64,000 bases of DNA from Macrostomum lignano (GCA_002269645.1 NIVC01003467.1:1-64000); one strand, 5' to 3'; shown: positions 3,801-53,085, counted from the stretch's first letter. Notes: a model not told the origin generated them from the sequence alone. Translations and numbers: made by a program.

Positions 3801-5024
3801 TCTAATTATATACTTTACATGGTACACGGTTGACTTCAAAAATAGTTTCGCCCACATTTCAACTGACATTCCTTTGATATTCTATTGGCTATCCTTCGTT
3901 TCCAAGAAGTTGTCGACTTCCGCAGACGGCGGAAGCGGCGCAGCTATCTCGTATGCGGCCGCCTCTGCAGATGGCCCACTTATTTTGAGGACTTACTGAA
4001 CTTTCTAGAATGGCTCGTAATCGTTTTTTTACTGGTTGGTCTGATTTTGAAATGGATACTGCTTGCTAATTCGCTACCTTTAACTGCAGCATACCCCTGT
4101 CAGATGGTATTTAGCGTCGCTTTCGGTCTGCTAATGTTTCGGGCAGTGCACTTTCTGAGCCTATCAGCCGTCATTGGTCCTGTAATAACGATGCTATGGA
4201 GTCTAGTATTCAATGACTTGCTGCCATTTCTGGCAATTATCGCCGTCATCATAATCGCTTTCGGAGTGTTTTTCTTCAACCTACTTTTCTCTGTGACTGG
4301 AGTGAACACCCAGTCAACTTACTACAACAGTCCTTGGTACAGCTGGGACGCCACTGTTGCAGCGATAACTCTACCATTTAACATACTGTTTACAAACTTT
4401 GAGAAGCTAGAATTTGGGAAGACGTTAACGAATATCACGATTGGAAAATCAGCCCACACGCAAGGAATCGGAGTGTTTGAGAATCTGATGCTGTTCCTTT
4501 TCATGGGCTGGTGAACATTGTTATGCTGAACCTACTGATCGCGCTCTTCAACCTTCGGGTCAACCGCATGGCTAATGAAGCTCTGGGGATCTGGCGAAGG
4601 ACGTACTTCGGCATGCTGAAGGAGTACCAAAACTTGAGTCCGGTTCCGCCACCGCTGTCATTTCTGTGGTACATCTACGATTGCTTTGTGAGAAAATGCT
4701 CTTGCAAAAAATGTAAAAACTCTGCGGGAGTGGCTCCGAAGAAGAAGGTTTGTTTTGTTTTTTTAATGGCGCGGTGACTCAGTAGGCTAATTGACAATTG
4801 TTTTGTCTCTATTTCAGACCGAAAACTGGTGGCGTGACCCTAAAAAGTATCCCGAGGAGTACATGGATTTTCTGGAGTTCCAAGCTAACCAATTAAGGCG
4901 GTTCCGCGCTTCTCTGCTATCCAATTCCAACTCCAATAGCCGAGATGATCTCATTGATCAATTGAGTCATCGATTGAAAGTACTGGAAGAACAGACTCAG
5001 GCGGTACATGAGAAGCTGAAGTAA
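839..5024 (+). CDS. Ankyrin-repeat TRP cation channel, paralog 1. Exon 1 is 839-4747 with three apparent -1 frameshifts near 3745, 3898 and 4507; intron 4748-4817; exon 2 is 4818-5024.
   Basis: About 12 ankyrin motifs (GNTCAHYAV, GNTVAHYAA, GNTCLHIAA, GATCFHFAC). Pre-S1 FATDCIYSLVQQEW and six hydrophobic segments across ORFs 3739, 3885 and 4511. S6/TRP-domain sequence NIVMLNLLIALFN...IWRRTYFGMLKEY...PVPPPLS. Colinear with the intact paralog at 25258-30940. The GT at 4748 and AG at 4817 splice in phase 0. Confidence 0.9.
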
Positions 5025-5255
5025 CCAGCTGGTTAAAACAAATATTCCATTATTTTTTCGCTTATGCAAGGCTCTTTAATGACCAATAATTTTAATTTTA
5101 TAGCATATTTTGAGGAGAACTTAAGTCTTCAAAGAAAGCTATTACAGTGTAGGCTTCCAATTAAGAGTTTGCAAAGGTTATAAATAAATCCTGTTCAGAA
5201 TTGTTGGCATAAGAAAAGCGACACAAGGAGCAAGGAAATATTTCAAAGGCATTGC

Positions 5256-5300
5256 CAGTGGCGTACGCAGGGGGGGGGGAAGGGGCCGCGGCCCCCCTTC
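5256..5300 (+). mobile_element. Solo terminus of a hAT-like non-autonomous DNA transposon
   Basis: CAGTGGCGTACGCAGGGGGG followed by a GC hairpin (GGGGCCGCGGCCCC) resembles common invertebrate hAT-type MITE ends. No matching opposite end was found in the window. Confidence 0.3.
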
Positions 5301-5852
5301 CTCAATCGCCCGCCAAAAAAAATTGATAGTATTGCTATTCAGGTATTCTTGTTAAAGCAAAATCGGTTTACTCAGAAAAACAAAAAATTGCAAGTATTCT
5401 AGTATTCTGTTACTCAAGTGTAATCGAGATTGAAATGGAAAATACGTTATTCATTGCAAAAAACAATGATAATCCGCTCTTTTGACATCCGGTTTTTTCA
5501 CTGTTCGAGCCATATTGCTATGGTCAGTTTGAAAATATTTATATTTTAACAAATGTAGGGTATAAATTTGAAGAGTAATTTTGTGATTGAAATATTTTTA
5601 TTCGGTTCTGTGGACACTTCAAAGACTTTTTGTTTATGCACAGATTTACGATTTTTGTTATTCGAATGTTTATTCTAGAATGTTAGTATCAACGCTCTAT
5701 TTATTGTTCGAGCAAATGCTATAAAATTAATAAGAAAAATTCTTTTAACATACAGATATCTTAAAATTATACTCGTAGTTTCACCTCTGGACTTATTTCA
5801 TTTAAATTTACGTCTCATTTAGACAGTGTCTCTAAGAACATTTTATTCTGCA

Positions 5853-7724
5853 ATATCCCCTGCCACCGATTTCCAGTCACTAATTCCCCTGCCACCAATT
5901 TCCTGTCACTAATTCCCCTGCCACCGATTTCATGTCACTAATTCACCTGCCACCAATTTCATGTCACTAATTCCCCTGCCACCGATTTCATGTCACTAAT
6001 TCCCCTGCCACCAATTTCCTGTCACTAATTCCCCTGCCACCGATTTCATGTCACTAATTCACCTGCCACCAATTTCATGTCACTAATTCACCTGCCACCA
6101 ATTTCATGTCACTAATTCCCCTGCCACCGATTTCCTGTCACTAATTCCCCTGCCACCGATTTCCTGTCACAAATTCTTCTGCTACCAATTTCCTGTCACT
6201 AATTCCCCTGCCACTAATTTCCTGTCACTAATTCCCCTGCCACCGATTTCCTGTCACAAATTCCCCTGCCACCGATTTCCTGTCACTAATTCCCCTCTGC
6301 CACCGATTTCCTGTCACTAATTCCCCTCTGCCACCGATTTCATTCCCCTGCAACCGATTTCCTGTCACTAATTCCCCTGCCACCAATTTCCTGTCACTGA
6401 TTCCCCTGCGACCAATTTCCTGTCACTGATTCCCCTGCCACCGATTTCCTGTCACTGATTCCCCTGCCACCAATATCCTGTCACTAATTCCCCTGCCACC
6501 GATTTCCTGTCACTAATTCCCCTCTGCCACCGATTTCCTGTCACTAATTCCCCTGCCACCGATTTCTTGTCACTAATTCTCCTGCCACCGATTTCCTGTC
6601 ACTAATTCCCCTCTGCCACCGATTTCCTGTCACTAATTCCCCTCTGCCACCGATTTCATTCCCCTGCAACCGATTTCCTGTCACTAATTCCCCTGCCACC
6701 GATTTCCTGTCACTGATTCTTCTGCTACCTACTTTATGTCACTAATTCCCCTGCCACCGATTTCCTGTCACAAATTTCCCTGCCACCGATTTCCTGTCAC
6801 AAATTCCCCTGCCACCGATTTCCTGTCACAAATTCTTCTGCTACCAATTTCCTGTCACTAATTCCCCTGCCACCGATTTCCTGTCACTAATTCCCCTTTG
6901 CCACTGATTTCCTGTCACTAATTCCCCTGCCACCGATTTCCTGTCACTAATTCCCCTCTGCCACCGATTTCCTGTCACTAATTCCCCTGCCACCGATTTC
7001 CTGTCACTAATTCCCCTCTGCCACCGATTTCCTGTCACTAATTCCCCTGCCACCGATTTCCTGTCACTAATTCCCCTCTGCCACCGATTTCCTGTCACTA
7101 ATTCCCCTCTGCCACCGATTTCCTGTCACTAATTCCCCTGCCACCGATTTCCTGTCACTAATTCCCCTCTGCCACCGATTTCCTGTCACTAATTCCCCTG
7201 CCACCAATTTCCTGTCACAAATTCCCCTGCCACCGATTTCGTGTCACAAATTCCCCTGCCACCGATTTCCTGTCACTAATTCCCCTGCCACCGATTTCCT
7301 GTCACTAATTCCCCTCTGCCACCGATTTCCTGTCACTAATTCCCCTGCCACCGATTTCCTGTCACTAATTCCCCTCTGCCACCGATTTCCTGTCACTAAT
7401 TCCCCTGCCACCGATTTCCTGTCACTGATTCCCCTGCCACCAATTTCCTGTCACTAATTCACCTGCCACCAATTTCCTGTCACTGATTCCACTGCCACTA
7501 ATTTCTTGTCACTGATTCCCCTGCCACCAATATCCTGTCACTAATTCCCCTGCCACCGATTTCCTGTCACTAATTCCCCTCTGCCACCGATTTCCTGTCA
7601 CTAATTCCCCTGCCACCGATTTCCTGTCACTAATTCCTCTGCCACCGATTTTCTGTCACTAATTCCCCTGCCACTAATTTCCTGTCACTAATTCCCCTGC
7701 TAGCAATTTCACGTCACAAATTCC
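5853..7724. repeat. 29/31-bp minisatellite, about 60 units (TCACTAATTCCCC[TC]TGCCACCGATTTCCTG)
   Basis: Directly visible tandem array. Alternating 29- and 31-bp units give the 20-aa periodicity of ORF 6841-7098. Confidence 0.95.
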
Positions 7725-7744
7725 ATGAGCGCTTCTTGTCTGTG

Positions 7745-7925
7745 GGTGAGCGCCCCTGCCTCTGGGTGGGGGTGCCCCTGTATCTTGGTGGACGCCCATA
7801 TCTTTGAGTAGGCGCCCATATCTCTGGGTGAGCGCCCATATCTCTGGGTGGGCGCCCCTATCTCTGGGTGGGCGCCCCTATCTCTGGGTGGGCGCCCCTA
7901 TCTCTGGGTGGGCGACCCTGTCTCT
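7745..7925. repeat. 20-bp tandem repeat (GGGCGCCCCTATCTCTGGGT), about 9 units
   Basis: Visible array. The unit resembles the reverse complement of the 31895-32277 array. Confidence 0.85.
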
Positions 7926-9794
7926 GACTGACTGACTCCCATTATTTTCATCAAGTTAAACAACCTAATTAGGCACTTAACGTAAATTCTAAATTTGCAG
8001 ATCGCTCTCGTACTGTATGGACCACTAGCAGTAGGCTGCCAGCGTTTTTTGTGTGTTCGTCCTCCAAATCTTACGATTATCAATATTTGACATACATGTA
8101 GTTTTGCTTATTAACGTATTTTTAGGTCACATATTGTACTCTCTCAGGGATTACTAGCTCGTATTGAGGTATTTGAATTTTTAGTCTTCATGATGAAGTT
8201 GTCAATCATTTTTACAACGGGTTTTATAAGTTTTGGCCCAGAAAGTCTGAAAAGGTCATGTGATTTTCGAATTTAGTTCTTATTATTCTTCGTTGATATG
8301 GAATCAAAGATCATTGTTCTGGTCTCACCAGACAATCACGTCGACCTCCGCGGTAACTGAAATTATTGATCCAGTCAATAATGAGAAGCGAAATTGTTTA
8401 TATTGACTAAGATCGGTAGATGTACACGAAAAATATTTGAGTGCAAGATTACAAACTCAATGATAAAAAACAAACATCGTTCAACAAAGTAATTTAAGCA
8501 AGACTATTTAATTAAAAATTCGATACCTGCTTATTTCATTCAATCATAGTTTGATTTGTTCTTCCAAAAACAATAAAGCCATCGGCCTACGCGAAAGTCC
8601 TTCATCGCTAGAGTTATATTTCCAGTTCGTGATAATCATTTCCCATGTCCCACGCACTCAAATCCCAGTTCCTATTTAGCACTTACTTATCCCAGCTCTA
8701 TATCGACCAAGTAATTACCGGAACTCTAATCCTACTCATTTTTTTCGCACCTATCTTACCATCCTCATCTACTTTCCAATCCTCCTCTCCATCTCTGTCA
8801 TTCGCGTGCAGAGTCCCACAGTTCTTCCCTCAGCCCTTAGCAACAGCAATTTTCCACGAATCCTATTCCCGATCACCCGATAGGCCTCCCAGCGTCCTCG
8901 CTTAGTGCTGTACCATGCTTATATGGAGTATTTTTCCATAAAAGTATCTGGCCACTTCAGGCTCTTCCGCGCAGCTCACTTCCCTCATCCTCTCTCTCTC
9001 TCTGTTCCTCATTCGCTCTCCCCTCCTACTTAAGCTACCTTCAGTCTCTGCTTGCGCATGATCCCGCAGCAAAAAAGTGTCTATAAGCCCTTAGGCGCTA
9101 TTTCTGCTCCCCCTCTTAGCCTTCGTCCTCCGGAATATCCTCCGGTCGGGTCTCCCCATCTCTTCCTCTTGATCGCCCCGGCCCGTCCCTCTTCACATCG
9201 CTCTTCAATTTTGCGGCCCCAGCCAGCGGCTATAAAGTCAGAAAGCGTCCAACAAACCTAATTTACTGCAGGCCCCGTTCAGGAGAGAGAATTAAAAAAG
9301 AGCAGCATATACAACGGCTGCAACCGCGTCCTCGGCTCTTTTCCAGCAGAGCGCGGAGCCACCTGGACTTTGGCGAGTAAAAAGCTCCGTCAGAGTGTCT
9401 AGGTGGATCCAGCAACGGTGAAGCTGTAACGTTTTAACCTCCCCCTTCCCCAATTCGACTTTTTACCCCCCCCCCCTCCCTGCCTGGCCGGTGGGCCATC
9501 CAGTTGTGTCCCAGCACGGCATCGAAGCTTCTCTATTTGTTCCTTTTCTTCCAGACTGAACGGTTGCACGAAATTTAAACCTTTTTTGATTACTGGATGC
9601 CCCACACAGCCTATATTTAGAGATTGCAACATGCCATGTAGCAGCAGTACGTCTAACCTTCGCTTCGCATGTAAACATTGATATATTCATCGCTAACGTA
9701 CTAAGGTAAGTGTAATCATAATTTTTTCTAATTGCTAATGGGCTAGTTAGGTTATTAAGTACTGTTTCCTAAAAAAATATGTAGATGACAATGA

Positions 9795-10018
<224 letters not shown>

Positions 10019-10091
10019 GTTGACCAAAAGCTATCAGCTATCAGCTAATCGCGTCAACTCACTTCCAGAACGTCAGCCGTGTATTTTGAGC

Positions 10092-10573
10092 ATGTCGAGT
10101 TCGTGTCTTCCCGAACCACCGAGTGACTGCGATAACAACACGGGTGGCGGCGACGACTTCAATGCAGCAGCTTCGAGAGGTTCACCCGTGACAGGCCTGT
10201 CCGTGCTCAACAGTCAGGACTCAGAGATGCAGATGCAGCTTGCCAGGCTATCCCGTCTGATGGCTCCAGCCGGTGGAAGCTCCACTGCGCTGCCACTAGA
10301 GTGCGACGCTGGATTCGAGAGCTCTTCTCTCTGCGGCAATTTCAACAATGTCGACCCGGAGTCCGATGATCGACCGACAGCCAAACAGAAGCGAGTAGCT
10401 CGCGTGGTGATGGCTGTCGCCTTCATTCTGCTGTCAATGTGCTTCGTGCTGATTGTTGTCACGCTGTCAATGTCTGATCACATTGACAGAATGGGTGAGT
10501 TTCCGGGAAGTGTGTTGAAATTAAAAAAGCGCATCTTTTTCTTCTGTCTACAGCATTGGAAAACGACTATTAG
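10092..10573 (+). CDS. Small protein of about 140 aa with one C-terminal transmembrane helix. Exons 10092-10494 and 10554-10573.
   Basis: ATG at 10092, a Ser/Asp-rich N-terminus, then KQKRVARVVMAVAFILLSMCFVLIVVTLSMSDHIDRM. A strong donor G|GTGAGT at 10495 and a pyrimidine tract plus CAG at 10553 splice to ALENDY-stop. Confidence 0.6.
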
Positions 10574-10587
10574 CACACTTCTCTCTT

Positions 10588-10856
10588 TACTCACCGTACT
10601 CTACTCTCTACTCACTGTACTCTACTCTCTAATCACTGTACTCTACTCTCTAATCACTGTACTCTACTCTCTAATCACTGTACTCTACTCTCTAATCAAT
10701 GTACTCTACTCTCTACTCATTGTACTCTACTCTCTAATCAATGTACTCTACTCTCTAATCACTATACTCTACTCTCTAATCACTGTACTCTACTCTCTAA
10801 TCACTGTACTCTACTCTCTACTCATTGTACTCTAATTTATACTCACTAAACTCTAA
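10588..10856. repeat. 21-bp tandem repeat (TCACTGTACTCTACTCTCTAA), about 12 units
   Basis: Visible array. It produces the artefactual LYSLITV tail of ORF 10020-10835. Confidence 0.95.
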
Positions 10857-12021
10857 TCTCTGCTTTCGATCCAAAGATGAGACGGGATTGAAGGGTTGAG
10901 GTCTCTCTGCCCTAGACGCTTACGGAAAGGTTATTAATAGGCTTTTAGGCCATGCATTGGTTTCCATGCCTTGTTTCTATTCTACTCGTAGAGCATTGTT
11001 ATAATTGTTATAATGACCAAGGAAGAAGCATTGCCAAAGAATGTTATTTCTTCGGTGAAAAGTACCAACTAACAGAATGCAAATCGGAATGAAGGCTAAA
11101 TGCTGATTACCTTATCAACTGAAGACTTATAAACGTAGACTTCTGGAAGACTCGACACTGAAGCTTAGGAATATTGGCTATAATGCTTTTAAAATCTTGA
11201 AAAAAATACTCTGGTATATTTAGCTTCTCAATCTTCTTACTAAGAAGTAGCAAGAAAAGAATATAGTTTTTCTCCTTTAGTTTCCTCAAGAAACTATTCA
11301 ATCTGCATTTTATCTCTTTACTATAATTAGAGATAAATTACAAGCATTGATTGTTCATTTCAGTTCGAAAAGCTCTAATGCACAGTCTGAGCAAGGCCAG
11401 GTCGCAGTCAAGCTCAAAGTTGTCATCGGAGTTTCGACAGACTTGGAATTTGGCTACCACTGCAGCATCAGCAACCGATAACTGATTGATGCAATGCAGA
11501 TTCGTTTTAGTATATTTAAGAATACCGAAACCAAAAAACGCTGTGGGCTGCAAATGACAACATTGCTTGTTTATTTGTATCTGTGTAACGTACATGTACT
11601 GCTCGATTTAAACTAAATTAAGTGATTCCTGTTTTGCGGTTCATGGCTTAAAAATCATTATGAAGGTAAATAAAAAAGCTAAAGGTAATATTACTCGTAG
11701 ATCGCGGCTCATTTCCCACGGTGAACTAGTAAAAGTAGGTTAAGTGTAGGCAGAAGTGTAGCTTCTGGTGTCAAGTGGTTAAAATGAATAAAAAGGTTTC
11801 TTGAGAGGCGTCTGAAGAGTCTAAGTGCCACGCATTAAAGGAAAAGTAAAACTCAATTAAACGGATACTATACTCGTATGGAATCAGCTTTGAATTTTGT
11901 TAACAAACGTAATTATTGGTTAGAGGTTACGTTTATAATTATAGAAAACGCCTGCTAGAAAAAGAACACAGCAAATTCTATAGAGTCTTGTAAGAAAGTA
12001 AACTCTGCAAAACCACAGGAG

Positions 12022-13140
12022 CTACTGACGCTGCACCATGCACGCCTCCAGCCAGTCGTCGCGCACCCTCGCTTCGTTCACTTGGCTAATACCATTGCGC
12101 AACTCGATAAGATCTACGTCATCCGGCAGTTGGCCAAGTATGAAGATGCAAATTCGAGCAAGAGGCCGGTAGATAATTCCATAGTTGTCCTGCTGAAGGA
12201 ATTCTTGCTGATTAAAGTCGATCCTGGCCACCTTTTGGGGAGATTCGTCCAGCCGCTGCCAGCCGGTGTTGTCATCCCAGTGCGGGAAGGTGACAAAAAA
12301 CCAAAACTTGCCTGGCTCCGCATCTTCCAGAGTTTCTAAGACTCTCTCGGCAGTGGCGTTCAGCACAGGCTCCACAAAGGGCGGGCCGAGACTCCAGCCG
12401 CCCGGATATCCGGACAGGTCGAGGCGGAAGAAGTTTCCCAGACTGCCAAACGCGGCGTCAGTGTCATTGAACAGGCTGCAGAACTTGACGCCATCTCGTC
12501 CCAGAAGGCGGCAGTTCAGAGGCGACGAGAAGCCCTCATAGGTGACGTGGCCAACGTCGTACAGAGCGTCGAGTCCCGACACGCACATGCCAGACTCACC
12601 GCCGTAGAACTTGCACAGATGAGCGTAGCGGAGGCACATCAGCGCAGTCGCGTCAGTGCCGTATGTTTGCGCCAGGTAGCGAATTCGAAGACAATTCCGG
12701 GTTTGGAAATCACCCACGAATAATTTTCCACTGGTTCCGCTCTCGGTGTATCGAACAGCAACATCAGGCAGTGGTTCATCCTCGAGATCAGTGCCCAGAA
12801 ATTCTTCGATACTGTCGAACACCTGGTTGGATATTCTCTTTGCCGTATCTTCATTCGCGCGTAAATTCTGTTGCAGCATCCTCTCCAGTTCCGTCCTGAG
12901 GTTTTCATTAAACGGTTGCTGTGGCAACAACGGATAGGCAGCTTCTTGATCCGCTGTGTTGAAGAGTTGCACGATTTGCAGAAACCTACCAAACACGTTT
13001 AATGCGGCATTCTTGTGCTTATTCTCGGGACCCCATTTAGGAAGGGCTGTTCGAAAGTCTTGAAAAAGTGTTTCGATAAAATTGTATTGTCGCATCTCTT
13101 TGGCGATTTTTTCCGGTTCTATTCCAGCGAATTCGGCCAT
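12022..13140 (-). CDS. PCIF1/CAPAM-like N6-adenine methyltransferase-fold protein, 372 aa, no WW domain, intronless, copy 1
   Basis: Motifs YEGFSSPLN, FCSLFNDTDAAFGSLGNFF, GGWSLGPPFVEPVL and WFFVTFPHW align to the PCIF1 catalytic domain (ECFASPLN, YCSAFPDTD..FGS.G, GSFEANPPFCEELM, FIVFIPEW). True ATG at 13140. Confidence 0.88.
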   Translation of the reverse strand: MAEFAGIEPEKIAKEMRQYNFIETLFQDFRTALPKWGPENKHKNAALNVFGRFLQIVQLFNTADQEAAYPLLPQQPFNENLRTELERMLQQNLRANEDTAKRISNQVFDSIEEFLGTDLEDEPLPDVAVRYTESGTSGKLFVGDFQTRNCLRIRYLAQTYGTDATALMCLRYAHLCKFYGGESGMCVSGLDALYDVGHVTYEGFSSPLNCRLLGRDGVKFCSLFNDTDAAFGSLGNFFRLDLSGYPGGWSLGPPFVEPVLNATAERVLETLEDAEPGKFWFFVTFPHWDDNTGWQRLDESPQKVARIDFNQQEFLQQDNYGIIYRPLARICIFILGQLPDDVDLIELRNGISQVNEARVRDDWLEACMVQRQ

Positions 13141-14848
13141 TATTTTCACACGGCTTGATTGTCTCAGTAATCGTTAGGGTAGTTTAGAGTGCAGATATTT
13201 GCAGCTCGGTGTTTTTTCAATGGCCTGTATTTATGTCGTTGCTCTCCAGCCGGTAGAGATTTTCATCGTTTATATTTCCAAGAAATGAAACAAAATCTAC
13301 GACAATAAAAATTCTCGCTGACGCGAGCGAGGGCAGGGAAATGTACAGTTTTGCAACTGAGGCAAAATTCCAGGAAATGGCTACTGTACATAACTCAGAT
13401 CCAAATAACTGGATGTATAGTCTCTTCGGCCCTGAAAATTGTTTTTTTTAACTAGAAACAATAGCCCAAGTGGCGCGCGCCGCCACTCGCTCATTGTAGG
13501 CAGCGCTAGAGCAGCTTATGTCCAGACAAAAAGTGCGCACAGTTATGTTCTTACCCCAAAAAGTCTGACCCCCGGCCTCAGTTCGTCTTTATGCAAAAGA
13601 GAGAGGCATACGAAGCTGCCGTGAAATGCGCAAGTACCTGCCGCAAAGTTTTGCTAGATTAATTTTCAAAATATATGATGAGACCATCTTCAATTCGAGC
13701 ACAAGAACGACGACTTAACTGGACAAGCTTTTTATCTTCGAGTACTATTAGTAGCATTTAAAGCTCGACACTTCGAATGATGGAAACTTAAAGCTTAATC
13801 AAAGTGGTATTTTCTGGAATTTTGCAGATACAAGCATCTGATAACTGGTCATTTCGGACATTGATTTTAAACTAGGATGACTGTAGGAAATTATTTTGAA
13901 GACAATTTCACTTCTAGGATTATAAACTCAAAGCTGAAGTTTCTAATCGGTGTCATATCTTAACTGCAACAGGTACAAACAAGATTAATAATTATATTTG
14001 CAGGAGGGTTGTGGGCACCCTTGCATAGCATCTTCCCTGAAATAGCTCTACAAACAGCACTGAGACAATTCTGCCTCAGTCTTTTTGTCTTTTTGTTTTC
14101 AGTCTTTTCTGTCTCACTCCGGAGCACATTAGCACGCTTCAAACAAAAGTGTACATCGTCTCTGACTTTCAAATCGTCAGGAATGTAACACTATGTGCTT
14201 TGGAGGTTGGCATACATGTTTGTAAATCGCATCGGCCAATTTTCGTTTACAAGCCCTAGATTGAATCAAACCAGAGGTTACGCTCGTAGTGGTGCGAGAG
14301 TCAAATGCGTTTACCGCTGGCTTATCGTCTGGAGACAATGGCGCAACATTTATGAGTGCGACTTTATGACTTGCTTTAGGTTTTGTTTTTTATCGGAGTC
14401 CAGATTTCAGGGTGACAGATCAGGACGTGCTCAACTTAATTCAATCAAAATCAATTGATGAAATCTATGGCATCGTCTTCGCCCTCCCAGTATGATCAGC
14501 AGCATCTCGAACGGAGATAGATTAGAGACTAAGACGCTGAAAAGATGCAACAGATTACCATGTCTCTTTCTACTTTAAAAAAGGTCTTTACGCTCAAACC
14601 AAGCCACTGGTAACTTTTGAGCATTCTACTTTTGCCAAACAACTTTCCAAACATGATATTTAATAGCAATTAGTAGCAAAACGTCCAAAAGCACAGTTCT
14701 AGACTTTTTATGCGTAAAATAGTTGCTGAGGATCTATCGAAATATAGAGGGTATTCAGAGAAATTCAGTACATCAGAGAAATTGTCCTTGGGTATCTGGT
14801 GCCACATGTTGAAGGCCAAGACACTCTGCTTGGGCCACGACACTCTGC

Positions 14849-16347
14849 TTGGGCCAAGACACTCTGCTTGCTCCCGATGAGGCATCTGCGGTGTCAGCAT
14901 GGGAAGCGCAATCTGCTAATTTCAACATTTCTACGGTGCTAAAAACACCAACTCCAAGACTTAAAAAAAAAGTCCAAGCAGACTTTTCGACGAACATATC
15001 GGAAGCAGCACCGACGCCCACAGAGCCGACTCCTCCGGTGCTCCCTTCAATGAGGCTTGGGCCTGGCTACATCCACAATATGCAGCAGCAGATCCAAGGC
15101 CTTGTTGATTTTCCGTTGGAGAGCCCACATGGTCTTCTTTATGTGCAGCTGAGCATTCACCGAGAGTTTGCGATGAGAAGCAGCGCACTTGAGGCCAAAG
15201 TCGATGCGCTAACGAGTGAGATAACCGGATATCGCTCGGAGATCAAGCGGCTGTCATCTATTATTGATCCTAATAGTGAATCTGTCCAGGTGACAACTTT
15301 CGAAGCGATAGACTCGTGGGAAGACTATATCCGCTTCATTGAAAACCCCGAGGTTTTGCACGAGAATTCGGTGAGTGTATAATACGCTTTTTGTAAAAAG
15401 TGTTTGTTTTGTAAAAAGATGTAAAAAGATTTACATCTTTTGAGATTGAGGCTGAGCAAATTGATGCATTAACTACTGTGTATATATACATAAAATACAA
15501 AAACTGAAGTAAAGTTTAAATATCCCAGCTAATTAAAAATCGCTTTGAACTCTTCCCTTTGACAGAGAAATCATTTGCGAGTCTTCGCGCGTGCCAAGTG
15601 GGAAGATTCGGTACGCGACATGCTCGACTCCGCCCCAAGGCTGAAGATGCAGGCCGTGGTCAACTACAAGGGAGTCGACATACAGCAGCGAGCCACACAG
15701 GCTGGTGTACCTACCCATTTAAGTGACGATGATCTTGGACTTAAAAAAGTATTTTTGCCATTTGTTCAAGGTTAGTGCTATTTTTCACTATAACATTTAT
15801 GAGCAGATCTTTAGCTCCTATGATTCAATACAAGTTAGACCGCATGCACTGCTTAAAAAGACTTCAAGAATAAGCCAAATTATATCTCCAATCTACTACT
15901 ACCCGACCATGAGTAGCAATGCAAAAATGTTTTTCCAAGAAATTTTAATTAAGATCTAATTGTTGCTGTTCATTTATCTTTAACAGAAGCGGTCACGAAG
16001 ATCTTCGGCAAAATCGGAGATGACAAAAGGCCTCCGATCCGAGCGGTCGCAAACGCTTGCGATCGTTTCAGACGGCGAATTCATCGCAAGGCCAGTGAAA
16101 AACCTCGGTCTACTAATAAACCTCAGCGGCTGGTTTGCAAGTATCGACCTCAGCAACCCAGGAGCTTTCAAAGACTGCAGCCGCTTCTGGAGCAGCTTGT
16201 GCCGTGCAGCAAAGACAGACCCAGAAGAAAGCTGCCGCCTCTTCAAAGGCGGCTTCACGCAAGCGCCGAAGATCTAGCGACTCTGATTCCTCTGATGCTA
16301 GTTCTATCGTGGACGTGTACTCGAATTCTAGCGATTTTGAAATCTAG
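14849..16347 (+). CDS. DUF4806-like, transposon-associated protein, probably 5'-incomplete. Exons about 14849-15370, 15566-15770 and 15987-16347, with one likely frameshift near 16120.
   Basis: Canonical splice sites (GTGAGT 15371, CAG 15565, GTTAGT 15771, CAG 15986) join in frame. A low-complexity N-terminus and coiled coil (LEAKVDALTSEI) are followed by VVNYKG...FLPFVQEAVTKIF...VANACDRFRRR, which resembles DUF4806. The domain call is by eye. Confidence 0.5.
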
Positions 16348-17239
16348 TAAAGTATGAACACTTGACGTCATCTCATTGTAGTTAACAATTATTTTTGTGT
16401 AATTTTATCGAGCTAAATTAGCTAAACAGTGAGTTTAATGTATGATTATGAGTGCATGCAAATTTGAAGGATCTCGTAAACCAGTGCTAACGGATACGAT
16501 TATCAATAGTCGCTGAACTCAGAATTGTCTATTCAGCTTGAGTGCTCACATTATGTATTTTCTATTTTGTTTAAACTTCATTAGTTACTGGTAGTTAGAA
16601 ACAAAATTATTTTGTTTAATTTCTTGCTAATGCAAATTTTCCTTACGCTTATGTTAGTTTTTTTCAGAAATTCAATGATTAATTACTAGCATATTTTAAA
16701 CATAAAGTTTTTTATAAATATTAATAAACCTTTCGTACTCTGAAAAGTATTTGTTTGCTCATGTACTCGCTCATGGGCTAAGCTCATGTACTCGTAGTTA
16801 CTAAAGAAGTCAGCTGATGCAGACACATGTCGTCGACGTGCTGATGGCTTGGCAAGGCGCATAGAGGCTTATTAAATATTCTAGCGCTCATGAAAAAAAT
16901 CCGACCTTCTGGCAGAATCGTTCAATATATCGACGGTCCTGAGGGCTGCTGACTTGATTCTGCGTTGCTCCAGTAACGACGCAGCGAAAACGCGTTCACA
17001 TAAAAACATTTAATTTTTAGCTCAACTCGAGATCATAGCACTATTTCAGCTTTCAGCATCTTTCTCTTTGCTTTTATTTGATAATCGAGCCAACCGGTGC
17101 TGGAAAATTAAATCAGTTTGAGGAGGACGAGAGGTGAGCGGGTGGGGTTGCGCTGAGCTTGCACAGCAAAATGCCTACTGAGCACTAGAGCTTAACCCAG
17201 CCCAAATGAACAAGCTCTAGGCCAGTGTGGTTGACACTC

Positions 17240-17460
17240 GAACAACCCCGGAATCTGGAGTGAGCTTCCACAGCCAGCCTCTCCAAATTCTCCAAGATTT
17301 GCTCTCGCGATTTTTATTTCCCCATGACTTTATTAAAGCATCAGCGGATACCAACGTCACACGCAAAGAGAAGCGAGTCGCTATCAAGGAGGTGTCTGAA
17401 GCTTGAAGCGGTTCCATTCATTTTCCCAAATGCTCCCATCTACTTATGATCTCACAAGAA
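17240..17460 (+). pseudogene. Decayed THAP zinc-finger domain (THAP or P-element-like N-terminus)
   Basis: Frameshifted fragments read SGVSFH, SKICSRDF, DFIKASADTNVTRK and LKLEAVPFIFPNAPIYL, matching the THAP FH..CS.HF..AVP.IF pattern. Confidence 0.55.
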
Positions 17461-18742
17461 GGCACAGCGAGCAACCTCAGTGACCTCAGGAGAAAGAGCT
17501 GGAATTGGAGTCTTTCTGGAAGCCGACTTCAATGCTGAGACGAACCTTCAGGAGATTTAGCTGCAAGCTGGAGCAGGAAGCAGCCAAGCCAGCTGGATTC
17601 CAGACGGCTACCCAAGGCAAGCTCTGCATCTATATGCTACAGACAGCTTCTGAATTCGTAACCTTGTTTTTTCTTGCGCTTAATGTGTTACAGAGGCATT
17701 GCCATAGAATGCTATTTTCGGGTGAAAAGTGCTAATGAACAGGAGGAAAACCGACATTCATACGAGCGTATTGGCTGAAGGCTGATTCTCTTATCAACTG
17801 GACTTATAAACGGAGGGCTTCTGGAAGACGTGACATTGAAGCTTAAGAATGTTGACTTTCATACTTTGAAAATCTTGAAAAAAAACTCTATCTGAGCGTG
17901 TGAATCAGTAAAAAATGACACTTGTATGGGGAATTGTCGTGCGGAATTGTCTACTAAGAAGTAGCAAGAACAGAATATAAACTTCTTTTTCTGTATATTT
18001 TTCAATAAAATTTGAAGTCTGCATTCTTCAAACGTATGCAAGAACTCAGAAATCGATGCTGGGATTTCTTGGTCTTGAATCTCTTTACTTGAATTGAAAA
18101 TAAATCGCCAACACTGACCGGTCATTTCAGTTCGACAAGCTCTTATGCGCATCATGAGCAAGGCAAGGTCGCAGTCAAACTCGAAGTTGTCGTTGGAGTT
18201 TCGGCAGACTTTTAATTTTGCTACCTCAACAATTCGGCAACTGATAACTGATTGATGCAATGCAGATTGGCTTAATATATCTATATTTAAAAACACCGAG
18301 TAACCCTTTGGGCTTTAAATGAAAAGATTGTTTGTTAATTTGCACTTGTGTAACATACTGCTCGATTTAAACTGAACTGAGTGAAAAACTTACTATGAAA
18401 GTAAATAAACAAAGCTTATTACGTAATATAAATCCCGGCTCATTACATACGGTAAACTAGAAAGTGTAAGCTAAAGTGAACGCATGCCCGACTTTTAAAG
18501 AAAAAGTTGTTTTATTCAACAGGTTTTTGAGCTACGCTCATAGCTTCCGGTATTACATGTGAGAGGTTAAACTGAATAAAAAATTATTTCTGTGGTGTCT
18601 GAAGATTTTTCAAATGGCTGCTGTTAGCTAGTTGTCAGAGGTTTTTAACTATAGGAAACTCCTGGTAGAAATATATTATATAACACAGAAAATTATATAG
18701 AGTAGAGTCTTTTAAGAAGTTAACTCTGCCAAACCACAGGAA

Positions 18743-19861
18743 CTACTGAGGCTGCACCCTGCACGCCTCCAGCCAGTCGTCGTGCACCTTCGCTTCGTCC
18801 AATTGGCTAATACGATTGCGCAACTCGATTAAATCTACGTCGTCAGGCAGTTGGCCGAGTATGAAGATGCAAATTCGAGCAAGAGGCCGGTAGATAATTC
18901 CATAGTTGTCCTGCTGAAGGAATTCTTGCTGATCAAAGTCGATCCTGGCCACCTTTTGGGTAGATTCATCCAGCCTCTGCCAGCCGGTGTTGTCATCCCA
19001 GTGCGGGAAGGTGACAAAAAACCAAAACTTGCCCGGCTCCGCATCGTCCAGAGTTTCTAAGACTCTCTCGGCAGTGGCGTTTAGAACGGGCTCCACAAAG
19101 GGCGGGCCGAGACTCCAGCCACCCGGATATCCGGACAGGTCGAGGCGGAAGAAGTTTCCCAGACTGCCAAACGCGGCGTCAGTGTCCTTGAACAGGCTGC
19201 AGAACTTGACGCCATCTCGTCCCAGAAGGCGGCAGTTCAGAGGCGACGAGAAGCCCTCATAGGTGACGTGGCCAACGTCGTACAGAGCGTCGAGTCCCGA
19301 CACGCACATGCCAGACTCACCGCCGTAGAACTTGCACAGATGAGCGTAGCGGAGGCACATCAGCGCAGTCGCGTCAGTTCCGTATGTTTGCGCCAGGTAG
19401 CGAATTCGAATACAGTTCCGGGTTTGGAAATCACCCACGAGTATATTTCCACTGGTTCCGCTCTCGGTGTATCGAACAGCAACATCAGGCAGCGGTTCAC
19501 CCTCGAGATCAATGCCTAGAAATTCTTCGATACTGTCGAACACCTGGTTGGATATTCTCTCTGCCGTATCTGCATTCGCGCGTAAATTCTGTTGAAGCAT
19601 CCTCTCCAGTTCCGTCCTGACGTTTTCATCCAATGGTTGCTGTGGCAACAACTGATAGGCAGCTTCTTGATCCGCTGTGTTGAAGAATTGCACGATTTGC
19701 AGAAACCTGCCAAACACAGCAAAAGTCGCATCCCTGTGCCTTTCCTCGGGACCCCATTGAGGAAGAGCGGTTCGATAGTCTTGAAAAAGCCTTTCGATAA
19801 AATTGTATTGTCGCATCTCCCTGGTGAGTTGGTCCGGTTCTATTCCAGCGAATTCGGCCAT
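18743..19861 (-). CDS. PCIF1/CAPAM-like N6-adenine methyltransferase-fold protein, 372 aa, copy 2
   Basis: About 39 aa differences from copy 1 by manual alignment (about 89% identity). Same motifs, including GPPF. Confidence 0.88.
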   Translation of the reverse strand: MAEFAGIEPDQLTREMRQYNFIERLFQDYRTALPQWGPEERHRDATFAVFGRFLQIVQFFNTADQEAAYQLLPQQPLDENVRTELERMLQQNLRANADTAERISNQVFDSIEEFLGIDLEGEPLPDVAVRYTESGTSGNILVGDFQTRNCIRIRYLAQTYGTDATALMCLRYAHLCKFYGGESGMCVSGLDALYDVGHVTYEGFSSPLNCRLLGRDGVKFCSLFKDTDAAFGSLGNFFRLDLSGYPGGWSLGPPFVEPVLNATAERVLETLDDAEPGKFWFFVTFPHWDDNTGWQRLDESTQKVARIDFDQQEFLQQDNYGIIYRPLARICIFILGQLPDDVDLIELRNRISQLDEAKVHDDWLEACRVQPQ

Positions 19862-20835
19862 TACTAACAGAAGGCTTGATTATCTTAGTAATTGTGAGAA
19901 TAGATGTTGAATGTTGAGGTTTTCAGCCCAGGATTTTTTCATAACCTGCATTTATATCGTTGCTTCCCAGCCCATAGAGATGTCATTGTTTAAATTTCCA
20001 AGAAATAAAAAAATCCACGAAGTACGAGGGCAGGGAACTGTACGGTTTTACAGATAGAGCGAAGGTCTCCAGGAAATGTCTACCGTACATAACTCAGGTT
20101 CAGGAGCGTAGAGTAGGGTTGGAGCGCCTGGGGGGAGCTCAGTGCTGCGTTTGTTTCCTGTCCTCCTGTGCGGGCCGGCCCACGCATCCACCCCTCCGTT
20201 GCCATGTCAGGTCGGGGTTGGGCGTCGGTCCCGGGCCTGCCCGCGGCTCCTCCCCAGGAGTGGCCTCCGCGCCGGGCTCATTTAGAGTTCTCCGGCCGGC
20301 CGTCCCGGCCTGTCAACCGTCCAGGTCAAACTGCTGTCTCGCCTTTGATGTCTGCCTGAAATCGATGGAAGCTGCTGTAGCTTTGCTATGCGCTGCATGT
20401 ACTATTTGAAGGCTGAGCCTATTTGCCCATTTCTATTATTCTAGCTTGTTTTCTAAGGTATATTTACATTTTAACCGCAGCAAAGTTCTGACCACCAACT
20501 ATTTATAAGCAAAAGAGAGAGGCCTACGGAGCTGTCGTGAAATGCATAAGCACTTGCTGCAAAGTTTTCCTCGACTACTTTTTAAAAGATGAGACCAACT
20601 TCAATTCCAGTATCAGATTTCTATTTTCTGCATCTATGTTCTGCAGTCTACTTTTAGTAGCATCGACACTTAAAGTGATAACCACAAACATCTTGATCGA
20701 AGTCGTATTTTAGGCAAAAAGTATCGGTTTTTTATTGGCATTACATTAATTTTAAACTAAGAGAAAATAAAAAGCTAAGAATCAACATTAGTAAAAGAGT
20801 ATATCAGTATTAGTATTAGTATATTAGTATATTTC

Positions 20836-25257: not shown

Positions 25258-28200
25258 TTAAGATGATTCGACTTTTTCTAGGCCATCTGGGGCAGCTTCT
25301 GGTTCATTATCAAAGTCTCGCTTTCGATGGAAATTGGCCTTTCTATTCTTCTTTCGCTTGCTGAGAATCTCTTCCATTGACTCGATTTTGGTCTCCAGCC
25401 GTTGCAGATATTCAACCAGGTTTTGGCTCGCGGTGGCAGAAACATTTACTGCGTGCGACTTCAGTATCTCAGTATCGCTCTTGTTTCGCGTTATTTCGTT
25501 TAATAATTTCGGTCGAATTTCACGAAAAATAGCCGCTTGAAATTTTAAGAACTCCAGATAATCTTCCGGGTATTCGGATTCATGACTCCAGTAGCCCCTC
25601 TGCAACGAAGATTTGTTAATATAAACTAATGAGACAAGCAAGACAATAAAATATTCAGTTTTACAAGTTTCGTGCTTATTCAATACAGTAGAGGAAAAAA
25701 TCTAGTTTATTCCATTATAATCCGTCCTGTACAACTGGGTCGTGACTGCCCTCTCAGCACAATGATCTACAGGATCTCCCAGAATTATGTGACAACCTTA
25801 GAAAAAGATCCTGACCGCACCTACTGGCTACATCTAGAACAAAATTCAAAATATTCCGTGGGAGCCTTACCGGTTTTTGTCCAACTTTTGATCTTCGAAT
25901 ATGCTGCTTCTTGCATCGGATTATTATTCTGATCGGATATTCCAGAAAAGAAAATGGAGGCGGCAAAAAACTGATGTTCTTGTACTCCTGCAGCATTTCA
26001 TAGTACGTCCTCCTCCAGATTCCCAAAGCCCTGCTGTGCATGCTGATCACAGTGAGGTTGAACCGAGCTATCAACAGATTGAGCATGACAATATTAGACA
26101 GAGTCAAGAACACGAACATGAACAGGTTGTTAAACCAGCCGAAGCCGTCTGGATGGGCAACTCGGCCCACATCCTGGCTTTCAGTACTACTGGTTGTTTC
26201 AAATCCGATCTTGTCAAAGTTTGTGAACAGCAGGTGAAACGGCAGTGTCAATATCTGCACGGTAGCATTCAACCTGTATTCTGTCGTGTTTGTTTTCGAT
26301 GACAAAGCTGCGACGACTGGGAACAATAAATTGAAGAAAAACACCCCAAACAAGTAGAAAATCACCAGCAGAATCAGTAGGAAAGGAACCAAATCCTTGA
26401 CGAGCAGGCTCTTAAGCATCGAGATGACCGGTCCAGTTCTTTGAAAACGATTGAGGAATGACACTGAACGAAATCCCCACAGCAGAAACGAGGTGGTCAG
26501 AATCATCTGGCAGACGTATTGTGTTTGTGGAGAAACAAACCATTGCGTTTCCAGCAGCTGTGCATTGTTGCGATTAAAAAAGCAAAAATCATTTTTTAGG
26601 TCACGGTTTGCAGGAAAGCATCCCCACGTAAGCCACAGTTTCAGTGATAAACCGGCCCACATGAAAAGAAGGGCCAACATGTCGAAATAATTCAGGATTT
26701 CCTTCAGGTACTTGTTGCAGTGACAGAATCCGCAAAGCGAGACAGCATTCACTCGCTTATTTCGCCTGAGAAATTCATTAACTTCCTGCATTGTCAGCGA
26801 AGCAGCGTATGCAAGCATCACAACATCCGGCGACCAATACTGGAACGTTGTTCGAAAATCCACGATGTACCAAGCAAAGTAAAGCATGAACACAATGAAC
26901 CCCACTAAATGACACAAAAAGCGTTGATTCGGCGTGTAGAGCTTTCCTTTGCCTAATGTGCTACAACTTTCGGTTGTCACTTTGTTGCTTTTTTTCAACC
27001 GATTGTGCCATTCCTCATGAACCAGATTGTGCACGCAATCTGTTGCAAACAGATCATCGACAGAGGCCTCCTCGACCATTTCCATCACGGTGCGAAACTG
27101 AACTTCTTCATCACTACTGTACCGTTTGACACAACAGCAGCTTTCCAATTTTTGCACACTGGCCGTAGACCGCCGACAAGGAAATCTCGGTCCCTGTTCT
27201 TCAGGCGGCGTGCCTTCGTCGCAAAGTGTACCGCGCATGTAATTCATTAAAATTTCCTTTTCTGTCCTGTTTGCGCCATTGAAGAGTCCATCAAGTGCGT
27301 TTACAGCAATGCCAATCACCTTATTGTACAGCTGTTGCAGGTCCTCGTTTTGGGAAGCTCCTCTAGCACCATAAACGTGTGGCTTCAGAGTGATCAGTGC
27401 GCTCGTGCATGCAGGAATTAGTTCAAACTGCCTAGTAGCCAATAAATCAGGCAGAACTTCTCGTGATATCTTTTTCTTTTTTGCGTCGTCAACATGAATT
27501 GCTGCATCTATGATTTCTAGCTCAGAGTATCCAGTTTTTGGTTCTCTTAATAAACCTTCGTACTCTTTATTGGTGAACTTCATTTGCTGCAAAAACTTTT
27601 TCTCTTCTTCATCATTAATCATGTTCAAGCAGAAGGCGCTACGTAGAATCATAGGGCTGTCCATTTCAAACGCCTGAATAAGAAGTGCCAATGACCGATC
27701 GACTCCATTGTCACGCTTCTCAATTATGCCTTCGCAAATCTGTCTTGCTGCCGATCTGTCCGGTAGAATCAGTCCCCTCTTCTTTGGATCAATCAGACTG
27801 CATTTTTCGGATACTTCTAGTCTTATCGGAAAAGTATCTAACTTTTGCTTAACTTGATCCAAGCTATAATTTTCCATTGCGAAACCGATGCAGGTCCAGC
27901 CGCGATCAGTTTCGTGGGCTAGTTGCAAACCCTCATTTTTTAGGTATTTGATATTTGCTCTATGCTCAGCCCTGGAGGCAAAGTGCAAGCAGGTAGCGCC
28001 TTTGTGTATTCCACCAGTGACTGTGAGGCGCAGTAAGTCATGGGGTGACAATTGCGACTGTGACAATATGGCTAGCGGTTCCACCAACTCCTTCAGTTCC
28101 TGGCTGCTCGAGAATGCGTGTATAGCATGCACACCGTTTGAATTCGACAGAATGCGCGCAATAAACAGCATTTCCCCAGCTTTTTGCTCCTGTAGAATGC

Positions 28201-30940: not shown

Positions 30941-31094
30941 TTTTGGGTTCTGGAATCGGCCCGGATGATCCCTCGACGCTGGACTGTCTGGTAAAGTTGA
31001 TTAAAAATTGCAGTATTCAAAATCACTTAGAACAAAAACAGACATGTAAGATAAGATATGAAGATGAGAACTAAGGTAAAATTGTAAAAAAAAC

Positions 31095-31670
<576 letters not shown>

Positions 31671-31894
31671 AAGAGCTTCTTTAAGAAAGGCCCTACTTTG
31701 CACATGAGCTGCGCAGCACACCAACTCTTATTCTTTGGCCTTCAAGCCTACATGTACTGAAGTGTAAAAACTCTGTAGGACTTCGCTCAGTCTTAAAGCA
31801 AATATAAAGTAAGTCGTTTGAAACAGTGTAACACAGCGGGAATGCTCTCGTGAGGCTTACAGCTAATTGTTTAGCTGTTACAGCTAACAGCTTA

Positions 31895-36442: not shown

Positions 36443-39688
<3,246 letters not shown>

Positions 39689-52082: not shown

Positions 52083-53085
52083 AACTCAGATGGTGTCAGA
52101 AATCACAGAGTTCAGCAATCAGATGGTGTCAGAAATCACAGAGTTCAGCAATCAGAGGGTGTCAGAAATCACAGAGTTCAGCAATCAGAGGGTGTCAGAA
52201 ATCACAGAGTTCAGCAATCAGAGGGTGTCAGAAATCATAGAGTTCAGCAATCAGAGGGTGTCAGAAATCACAGAGTTCACCAATCAGAGGGTGTCAGAAA
52301 TCACAGAGTTCAGCAATCAGAGGGTGTCAGAAATCACAGAGTTCAGCAATCAGATGGTGTCAGAAATCACAGAGTTCACCAATCAGATGGTGTCAGAAAT
52401 CACAGAGTTCAGCAATCAGAGGGTGTCAGAAATCACACAGTTCAGCAATCAGATGGTGTCAGAAATCACACAGTTCAGCAATCAGAGGATGTCAGAAATC
52501 ACAGAGTTCAGCAATCAGATGGTGTCAGAAATCACAGAGTTCAGCAATCAGAGGGTGTCAGAAATCACAGAGTTCAGCAATCAGAGGGTGTCAGAAATCA
52601 TAGAGTTCAGCAATCAGAGGGTGTCAGAAATCACAGAGTTCACCAATCAGATGGTGTCAGAAATCACAGAGTTCAGCAACCAGAGGGTGTCAGAAATCAC
52701 AGAAGTTCACCAATCAGATGGTGTCAGAAATCACAGAGTTCAGCAATCAGAGGATGTCAGAAATCACAGAGTTCACCAATCAGAGGGTGTCAGAAATCAC
52801 AGAGTTCACCAATCAGAGGGTGTCAGAAATCACAGAGTTCACCAATCAGAGGGTGTCAGAAATCACAGAGTTCAGCAATCAGAGGGTGTCAGAAATCACA
52901 GAGTTCACCAATCAGAGGGTGTCAGAAATCACAGAGTTCAGCAATCAGAGGGTGTCAGAAATCACAGAGTTCACCAATCAGATGGTGTCAGAAATCACAG
53001 AGTTCAGCAACCAGAGGGTGTCAGAAATCACAGAGTTCACCAATCAGAGGGTGTCAGAAATCACAGAGTTCAGCAACCAGAAGGC
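52083..53085. repeat. 33-bp tandem repeat (TCAGAAATCACAGAGTTCAGCAATCAGAGGGTG), about 30 units
   Basis: Direct inspection. There is a one-base insertion near 52703. The array abuts the 3' end of the WSC gene. Confidence 0.97.

Follow-up and report, generated by a model that had tools for sequence, protein, structure and literature searches.

In a 64,000-nt stretch of contig NIVC01003467.1 of the Macrostomum lignano assembly GCA_002269645.1 (Mlig_3_7; NIVC00000000), hereafter the window, two neighbouring genes, copy A and copy B, each encode a short protein of the PCIF1/CAPAM family of cap adenosine methyltransferases, in which the catalytic Asn of motif IV (NPPF) is replaced by Gly (GPPF). We hold with about even confidence that these GPPF proteins are maintained, probably non-catalytic paralogues that bind S-adenosylmethionine (SAM) and capped RNA. 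The substitution is specific, the segment that bears it is under purifying selection, and the genes belong to a short giant-virus-type branch of the family whose other Macrostomum lignano members keep NPPF.

Both genes are intronless open reading frames (ORFs) of 372 codons on the minus strand (Table 1), and lie where the initial annotation had placed the duplicated genes; the ORF list and the alignment confirm their limits and the GPPF reading. The two proteins are identical at 333 of 372 positions (90%) in a gapless alignment. The public gene model on NIVC01003467.1 is likewise one exon of 372 aa; copy A is a member of the transcript-based cluster Mlig015920, and the array copies are named BOX15_Mlig015920g2 and g4 in the Mlig_3_7 annotation. 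Since that annotation was built solely from RNA-seq-derived transcripts (StringTie/TACO, de novo assembly, TransDecoder), the names are indirect evidence that copies A and B are transcribed. A block of about 230 bp upstream of the ORF is conserved between the copies. It includes a TATA-like element that precedes the ATG by about 89 nt and reads TATAAAT in copy B, a possible core promoter element judging from its sequence, and CATAAAT in copy A. A scan for bacterial promoters and terminators was set aside, the locus being eukaryotic.

The family assignment was supported by profile, sequence and structure comparisons alike. Both copies matched PF12237 (PCIF1_WW, the methyltransferase domain) with 89-90 bits, far above the curated cut-off of 31.1, and with E values from 1e-25 to 3e-25, the latter for copy A. 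In a phmmer search of PDB, copy B matched 6irv (E 7e-10) over about 110 core residues, and in both copies the Gly of GPPF aligned to the Asn of NPPF in the human and zebrafish CAPAM structures 6irv/6irx. The structure of copy B predicted by AlphaFold2 has a predicted local distance difference test (pLDDT) score of 88.9 and a predicted template modelling (pTM) score of 0.88, and its top six Foldseek matches in PDB are all CAPAM (E 8e-15 to 1e-11, probability 1.00). We concluded that the window genes belong to the PCIF1/CAPAM superfamily and that their products have a CAPAM-like predicted fold. The motifs that had been noted as proximal to SAM and the cap (EGFSSPLN, FCSLF.DTD..FGSLG and FPHW) are present in both copies. 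The Gly codon is GGC in copies A and B and in 7 of 7 copies from three other contigs, which agrees with the earlier view that Asn-to-Gly is not a read error.

N6-adenine methyltransferases bond the target amino group through the residue that opens motif IV, which is Asp, Asn, Ser or His. The consensus of this motif, quoted from Iyer et al. as [DNSH]PP[YFW], does not include Gly; both window copies and all seven on other contigs depart from it by reading GPPF. Neighbour-joining (NJ) analysis of the core pairs the window clade with the Mlig030305 group as its sister (98% bootstrap), and Gly is therefore derived on the window branch, because this sister clade and the other paralogues have NPPF. 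The Asn codon of the sister Mlig030305g1 is AAT. At least two nucleotide changes lead from Asn to Gly, and both possible intermediates, Asp (GAC) and Ser (AGC), fit the consensus. Of the 26 columns that are at least 80% conserved among 168 other core domains, the window proteins keep 23. The three departures are A205S, which is also seen in NPPF members, S210C, which is the residue of human and zebrafish PCIF1, and N252G, which alone is radical and falls in a column with 96% Asn. Tajima relative-rate tests with seven outgroups found the GPPF lineage not accelerated in comparison with its NPPF sister (p 0.10-0.90). At the level of sequence, these results showed that Asn-to-Gly is a specific change and not general decay.

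A census of about 185 domain instances found Asn at the first position of motif IV in 165 (about 89%). Gly was found in three places: the window clade; the GPPF protein P0125, which is encoded on a gene-dense, giant-virus-like contig with 27% GC; and a dinoflagellate GPPY clade (Tripos fusus and others), in which Gly is kept across 62-84% identity. The initial annotation had asked whether GPPF is a common or characterised variant of the family; it is rare, and a literature search for GPPF or GPPY variants found no paper, but Gly does recur in dinoflagellates and on the giant-virus-like contig. The dinoflagellate transcripts P0014, P0016, P0018 and P0019 have GPPY for NPP[FY] with the remaining motifs intact; P0017, from the dinoflagellate Durusdinium trenchii, has NPPF. 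Six two-domain metagenomic members (P0101, P0152, P0161, P0124, P0069 and P0073) have one or both motif IV sites degenerate, in the forms VPPY+FPPF, VPPN+FPPN, IPPH+HIPY, APSY+HPPY, GIVM and GVIF.

The duplicated DNA amounts to about 2.1 kb per copy, and the similarity within it is very uneven. Sliding identity between the copies is 62-77% in the 5' flank and 99-100% in the middle of the ORF; past the stop codon it drops at once to 64% and next to 40%. The aligned flanks have a p-distance of 0.32-0.42 (Jukes-Cantor 0.4-0.6) and 68-70 gap columns in 400-700 bp, whereas the ORFs have zero indels and no stops between them. The copies show 4 differences in residues 156-341 against 28 in residues 1-155, which reproduces the contrast given in the initial annotation, as does the far greater divergence of the flanks; its statement that most core differences are synonymous holds only just, with 9 synonymous and 6 non-synonymous changes in residues 141-330. 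A second conserved block, at 11322-11621 and 18079-18300 (71-78% identity), lies about 400-700 bp downstream of the stops, is set off from the ORF by unalignable sequence and contains short similar ORFs of 85 and 145 aa.

By the Nei-Gojobori method, the whole ORF has a synonymous divergence (dS) of 0.108 and a non-synonymous divergence (dN) of 0.050, with a dN/dS ratio (omega) of 0.47 (Fisher p=0.004). The N-terminal 140 residues evolve faster, with an omega of 0.61 that is not significantly below 1. In residues 141-250 dS is only 0.038, probably owing to gene conversion. In residues 251-341, which include GPPF, dS is 0.166, as high as at the termini, and dN is 0.014, giving an omega of 0.09 (Fisher p<0.001), clear evidence of purifying selection on the motif-bearing segment. 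Consequently, the strong core conservation claimed earlier is in part selection and in part gene conversion, and an omega near 1 with conversion as the sole cause of core identity, the outcome that the initial annotation had set against its own proposal, is not what was found. Conversion is insufficient on this sequence evidence: residues 251-341, and a frame kept exactly to the stop codon, need selection.

The same array was found on other contigs of this redundant assembly. On NIVC01000859.1, copy B is 100% and copy A 99.7% identical to the window copies. On NIVC01002998.1 (locus L023:7570-22294) the array has three copies in the order B - C - A, as against two in the window, and copy C is a single-crossover hybrid, A-type to nucleotide 267 and B-type from nucleotide 345, as unequal crossing-over within a B-A array would produce. 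The A copy of that contig has the B-like patches K139N, L140I, F141L and E272D, that is, short conversion tracts. These observations demonstrated gene conversion and unequal crossing-over in the array, with variable copy number. Copies C and A on NIVC01002998.1 also have one additional A in the A6 homopolymer that occupies ORF nucleotides 24-29. This is either a true frameshift or an assembly error; the latter would be in keeping with PacBio data, since a redundant contig of the window locus has four single-base deletions. That contig is NIVC01000620.1, the end of which (L022) corresponds to window 2629-14197 at 99.7% identity and shows the four deletions, and no substitutions, in the 1401 bp that comprise copy A and the adjacent flanks. 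Two gene models were rejected as further genes. Mlig002616g1 (P0029, 131 aa, frameshifted), considered as a third, broken copy, comes from that redundant contig of the window locus, where indel errors break its frame, and was discarded as evidence of decay; the chimeric P0183 (Mlig015920g2) is a 14.7-kb model that joins a B-type 5' part to an A-type copy.

To place the genes within the family, an exhaustive HMMER search was used, which gave 1639 relatives, the full-length matches being proteins of about 310-450 aa. Word-indexed searches with a protein or an alignment as query missed the Macrostomum lignano paralogues, and the exhaustive search alone recovered them. The closest relatives are these paralogues and short giant-virus or metagenomic proteins, not animal PCIF1; phmmer scores reach 122 bits to metagenomic members versus 42 bits to human PCIF1. 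The short metagenomic relatives align nearly end to end, N-terminal helical region included (query residues 12-16 to 346-362 in several relatives), and the window proteins are thus co-linear over their full length with a short family made up of an N-terminal helical region and the core, about 310-450 aa in length and without a WW domain. The best matches in BFVD are PCIF1-like proteins of Bodo saltans virus, Pithovirus LCPAC, Hokovirus, Cafeteria roenbergensis virus (CroV), Tetraselmis virus 1 and Salmon gill poxvirus; the CroV protein E3T4I2 (362 aa) gives template modelling (TM) scores of 0.68/0.69 over the full length, and human CAPAM lower ones of 0.50/0.39. In a scan of viral contigs, 19 loci fell on contigs of giant viruses (up to 956 kb long, several named GVMAG), and the contig of the relative P0030 also encodes Rpb5, RNase III, Skp1 and OTU homologues.

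By these comparisons, the window genes are members of a distinct short, WW-less, giant-virus-type branch and are not canonical PCIF1 orthologues. Their description in the initial annotation as duplicated PCIF1 cap methyltransferases is right as to family and copy number but not as to orthology. The N-terminal WW domain, with which canonical PCIF1 binds the Ser5-phosphorylated C-terminal domain (CTD) of RNA polymerase II, is present in neither copy, as had been noted: Pfam gives PF12237 alone, the frame is shut 6-11 codons upstream of the ATG, and the gene model has a single exon. This is the normal state of the short branch rather than a loss, because full-length giant-virus-type relatives never have WW. 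Genes with NPPF exist in Macrostomum lignano as paralogues of the short family, namely Mlig030305g1 (361 aa, intronless, 39-40% identical to the window proteins), Mlig000263g2/4/6 and A0A1I8HAP9, and the paralogue loci sit among ordinary host genes. When a human CAPAM fragment was used as query for a WW-NPPF PCIF1 in Macrostomum lignano, the orthologue that the initial annotation had proposed to look for, short fragments alone were returned, mostly vertebrate-like. Bootstrap values in the NJ tree are 0-35% for nodes beyond the Mlig015920 and Mlig030305 clade, at which the direction between virus and flatworm is not separable. The Mlig000263g2/4/6 models (L026:8519-15017, contig NIVC01002568.1) have 1204-1283 aa and join three in-frame tandem NPPF units, units 1 and 2 being split at about residue 289; they may represent either a true multi-domain protein or read-through of a tandem array.

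In long relatives the domain is joined to Rpb1, Rpb2, a capping enzyme, a giant-virus poly(A) polymerase, XRN or an SNF2 helicase, and these fusions tie the short branch to mRNA synthesis and mRNA ends. As predicted proteins, they suggest that virus-encoded methylation of the cap-adjacent adenosine is coupled directly to transcription. The metagenomic examples P0051, P0136, P0128, P0110, P0071 and P0167 comprise fusions to Rpb1, to Rpb2, to a capping enzyme plus methyltransferase, to the catalytic subunit of the nucleocytoplasmic large DNA virus (NCLDV) poly(A) polymerase plus glycosyltransferase family 8 (GT8), to an XRN 5'-3' exonuclease and to an SNF2 helicase; P0036 and P0040 have N-terminal regions that resemble GT8 by eye. 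In a literature search we did not find the function of giant-virus PCIF1, or a virus-encoded modification of the cap-adjacent adenosine deduced from these fusions, described. The search gave nothing useful on PCIF1 in Macrostomum or flatworms, and the Mlig gene names of these loci are absent from the text of the genome-paper supplements.

On the reading that we favour, the window genes are tandem paralogues, transcribed and kept by selection, in a short WW-less giant-virus-type branch of the PCIF1/CAPAM family that has expanded in Macrostomum lignano, and the motif IV Asn, which orients the adenine N6 amino group, was replaced by Gly after the split from the NPPF sister and before the tandem duplication. 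The protein would keep the CAPAM-like fold and the binding of SAM and a capped 5' end, with methyl transfer poor or absent, and would act by binding, competing with or modulating the NPPF paralogues at the cap-adjacent adenosine. Concerted evolution of the array proceeds by gene conversion and unequal crossing-over, and its copy number varies. By analogy with characterised relatives, we infer the loss of catalysis, the ligands bound and the cellular role. Little or no N6-methyl transfer is expected because NPPF and N184 mutants are inactive and because disabled PCIF1-clade proteins are retained elsewhere. The PCIF1 NPPF mutants APPA and SPPG are inactive, and so are METTL16 mutated at N184 and METTL5 in which alanine replaces both the first and the last residue of the motif; in Drosophila Pcif1, NPPF is changed to NPPH, and flies are without N6,2'-O-dimethyladenosine (m6Am). 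A PCIF1 of Trypanosoma cruzi makes m7Gpppm6Am. These reports bear out what the initial annotation had said of the family, namely that the NPPF Asn is needed for catalysis, that Drosophila Pcif1 is inactive and that a trypanosome homologue acts on the spliced-leader cap.

Several points weigh against this reading. APPA and SPPG are double mutants, whereas a single Asn-to-Gly change is seen here. Gly is the most recurrent non-canonical residue in otherwise intact single-domain members, which fits a tolerated or altered site, and the retention of the other motifs without rate acceleration is equally expected of a still-active enzyme. The purifying selection was measured on one sequence pair with small counts, and part of the identity between copies A and B stems from gene conversion. 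Moreover, we know of no case in which PCIF1 works with a non-catalytic partner. A broader reading, which we regard as possible though doubtful, is that a giant-virus-type cap-adenosine methyltransferase family was fixed and expanded in an animal, where the GPPF array may act by binding: it may regulate the NPPF paralogues or compete with them at the cap-adjacent adenosine, possibly that of spliced-leader caps, or it may serve as a decoy against viruses or transposons. Or else GPP[FY] may be a functional motif of altered chemistry shared with dinoflagellates. The tie to spliced-leader or trimethylguanosine (TMG) caps and the decoy role, both suggested in the initial annotation, found no support in this analysis.

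Three other explanations have to be weighed. The strongest of them, which we consider rather unlikely, is that the GPPF proteins are still active with an altered site, the Pro-Pro carbonyls, the stacking Phe and water taking the place of Asn, or the larger pocket accepting another or a modified base or cap. The other conserved positions are retained, including PPF and the helix residues R171-Y172; selection on the motif segment is strong and the rate is not raised; Gly arose independently at least three times and is stable in the dinoflagellate GPPY clade; and the path from AAY to GGC can run through the allowed Asp (GAC) or Ser (AGC). All of this would be in keeping with activity. On the other hand, Gly lies outside the consensus of all known N6-adenine methyltransferases, loss of the first-position Asn, alone or with other residues, kills the activity of PCIF1, METTL16 and METTL5, and the column is 96% Asn in the family.

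It is improbable, in our judgement, that the copies are young decaying duplicates without a function of their own, kept intact and similar only by conversion. The three-copy array with its A/B hybrid, the B-like patches in an A copy, the dS of 0.038 in residues 141-250, an ORF dS (0.11) far under the flank divergence (0.4-0.6), the N-terminal omega and the additional A in two NIVC01002998.1 copies would all suit such an origin. However, conversion between two copies without selection cannot purge disabling mutations; residues 251-341 combine high dS with very low dN, the ORFs lack indels and stops amid indel-rich flanks with identity dropping exactly at the stop codon, 23 of 26 conserved residues have been kept despite about 60% divergence from the sister and at the sister's rate, transcript-based gene models exist, and the additional A, lying in a homopolymer, may be an assembly error. 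Far less probable still is an origin as domesticated or residual methyltransferase domains of DIRS1-type retrotransposons. Iyer et al. placed the DIRS1 domains in the PCIF1 clade and regarded all of them as inactive, and the genes are intronless and repeated in a window that holds a reverse transcriptase (RT) element. The DIRS1 architecture, a polyprotein with RT and RNase H plus a tyrosine recombinase, is not seen here, as the ORFs are free-standing, no RT, RNase H or recombinase adjoins either copy, and the RT element at 48563-50824 is 30 kb away. The family hidden Markov model matches just the two ORFs in the window; full-length similarity is closest to giant-virus and Macrostomum lignano proteins that stand alone and share the N-terminal domain, rather than to polyproteins; in the long relatives tested, the fusion partners are transcription or capping enzymes and not RT; and one catalytic residue is changed here versus several in the DIRS1 domains. 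A DIRS1 origin is therefore unlikely as far as sequence comparison goes.

Table 1. Features of the PCIF1-like gene array, in window coordinates
Feature	Position	Strand	Evidence or remark
Copy A, intronless 372-codon ORF for a short PCIF1/CAPAM-like protein with GPPF	12022-13140	-	ATG at 13140; in-frame GTG at 13149
Copy B, intronless 372-codon ORF with GPPF	18743-19861	-	ORF list, PF12237, PDB phmmer, AlphaFold2 model
Duplicated unit A (ORF, ~250 bp upstream, ~700 bp downstream)	11312-13398	-	Self-BLAST, sliding identity
Duplicated unit B	18079-20097	-	Self-BLAST, sliding identity
GPPF codons of copy A (GGC CCG CCC TTT), position of catalytic motif IV (NPPF)	12376-12387	-	Family and PDB alignment
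GPPF codons of copy B	19097-19108	-	Sequence
Purifying-selection segment, copy A residues 251-341 including GPPF	12118-12390	-	Copy B counterpart 18839-19111
Probable recent gene-conversion tract, copy A residues ~141-250	12391-12721	-	dS 0.038; copy B counterpart ~19112-19442; limits approximate
TATAAAT, possible core promoter element	19950-19956	-	89 nt upstream of copy B ATG, in conserved upstream block

Elsewhere in the window, two large paralogous intronless ankyrin-repeat ORFs, at 839-4514 (+) and 25754-30940 (-), flank the PCIF1-like pair, and the same genes neighbour the array on other contigs. Their hydrophobic C-terminal region appears by eye to span the membrane several times, perhaps as in transient receptor potential (TRP) channels; Pfam sees the ankyrin repeats alone. 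An inverted segmental duplication relates 36443-39179 (-) to 43363-47807 (+) and includes an ORF for the C-terminal part of a protein kinase (36443-37000 / 47256-47807, about 85% DNA identity) and ankyrin-repeat ORFs (38682-39179 / 43363-43917). The retroelement remnant at 48563-50824 (+) consists of a gag-like ORF followed by an RT ORF (RVT_1, E 8e-10), has 56-58% GC and carries no PCIF1-like domain. Satellite arrays (29 bp x 64; 33 bp x 30, open in several frames; 7 bp x 139; TTAC x 110) and a CT-rich low-complexity stretch, which yields long spurious ORFs, occupy 5856-7724, 52086-53081, 57483-58444, 39206-39646 and 31001-31724.

To our knowledge, no writer of cap m6Am other than PCIF1 has been described, and what the mark does is debated. 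The NPPF paralogues and the selected GPPF paralogues of Macrostomum lignano form a natural pair, one active-looking and the other dead-looking, with which roles of methylation and of binding might be separated, and the animal can be made transgenic (Wudarski et al. 2017). The initial annotation had inferred a selected pseudo-methyltransferase or an enzyme of altered chemistry or substrate, and the best candidate for an undescribed system in the window; the selection and the missing Asn stand, but inactive PCIF1-clade members are already known and Gly recurs, and the GPPF genes are a variant and not a new kind of system. They lengthen the list of disabled catalytic motifs retained in the clade, and the recurrence of Gly raises the question whether GPP[FY] is a tolerated active-site variant. 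The expansion of a giant-virus-type cap methyltransferase family in an animal, together with the viral domain fusions, may be the more interesting lead.

Among known systems, the window proteins share PF12237 and the predicted fold with vertebrate PCIF1/CAPAM (6irv, 6irw, 6irx-6is0), the cap-specific mRNA (2'-O-methyladenosine-N6-)-methyltransferase, as well as the motifs E-x-F-[AS]-S-P-L-N, FCS-F-D-T-D-x-x-FGS-x-G, x-PPF and P-x-W. Vertebrate CAPAM, however, has about 700 aa with a WW domain and a long linker, both of which the 372-aa window proteins lack; structure-based identity is 16% with a TM score of about 0.5, and Gly replaces the catalytic Asn553, so that the relation is not one of orthology. 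Drosophila Pcif1 and the DIRS1 domains are precedents for retained PCIF1-clade proteins that have a disabled motif and act by binding. In Drosophila Pcif1 it is the last motif residue that is changed and WW is kept, whereas the window proteins have a first-position Asn-to-Gly change and are WW-less; the DIRS1 domains have several substitutions and lie inside a polyprotein, in contrast to the single change and free-standing form seen here. The dinoflagellate GPPY proteins (e.g. the Tripos fusus MMETSP1074 transcript), which are uncharacterised, have Gly at the same position and the other motifs intact, but have 446-541 aa, belong to a canonical-like branch, end the motif in Tyr and are of independent origin. 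The giant-virus (Nucleocytoviricota) PCIF1-like proteins, also uncharacterised, have the same architecture of N-terminal helical region and core in about 315-390 aa; nearly all of them have NPP[FY], and the window genes have ordinary host neighbours in the genome of an animal. In Macrostomum lignano itself, Mlig030305g1, Mlig000263g2/4/6 and A0A1I8HAP9 belong to the same short family, can be aligned over the full length, are 31-40% identical to the window proteins and differ from them in keeping NPPF.

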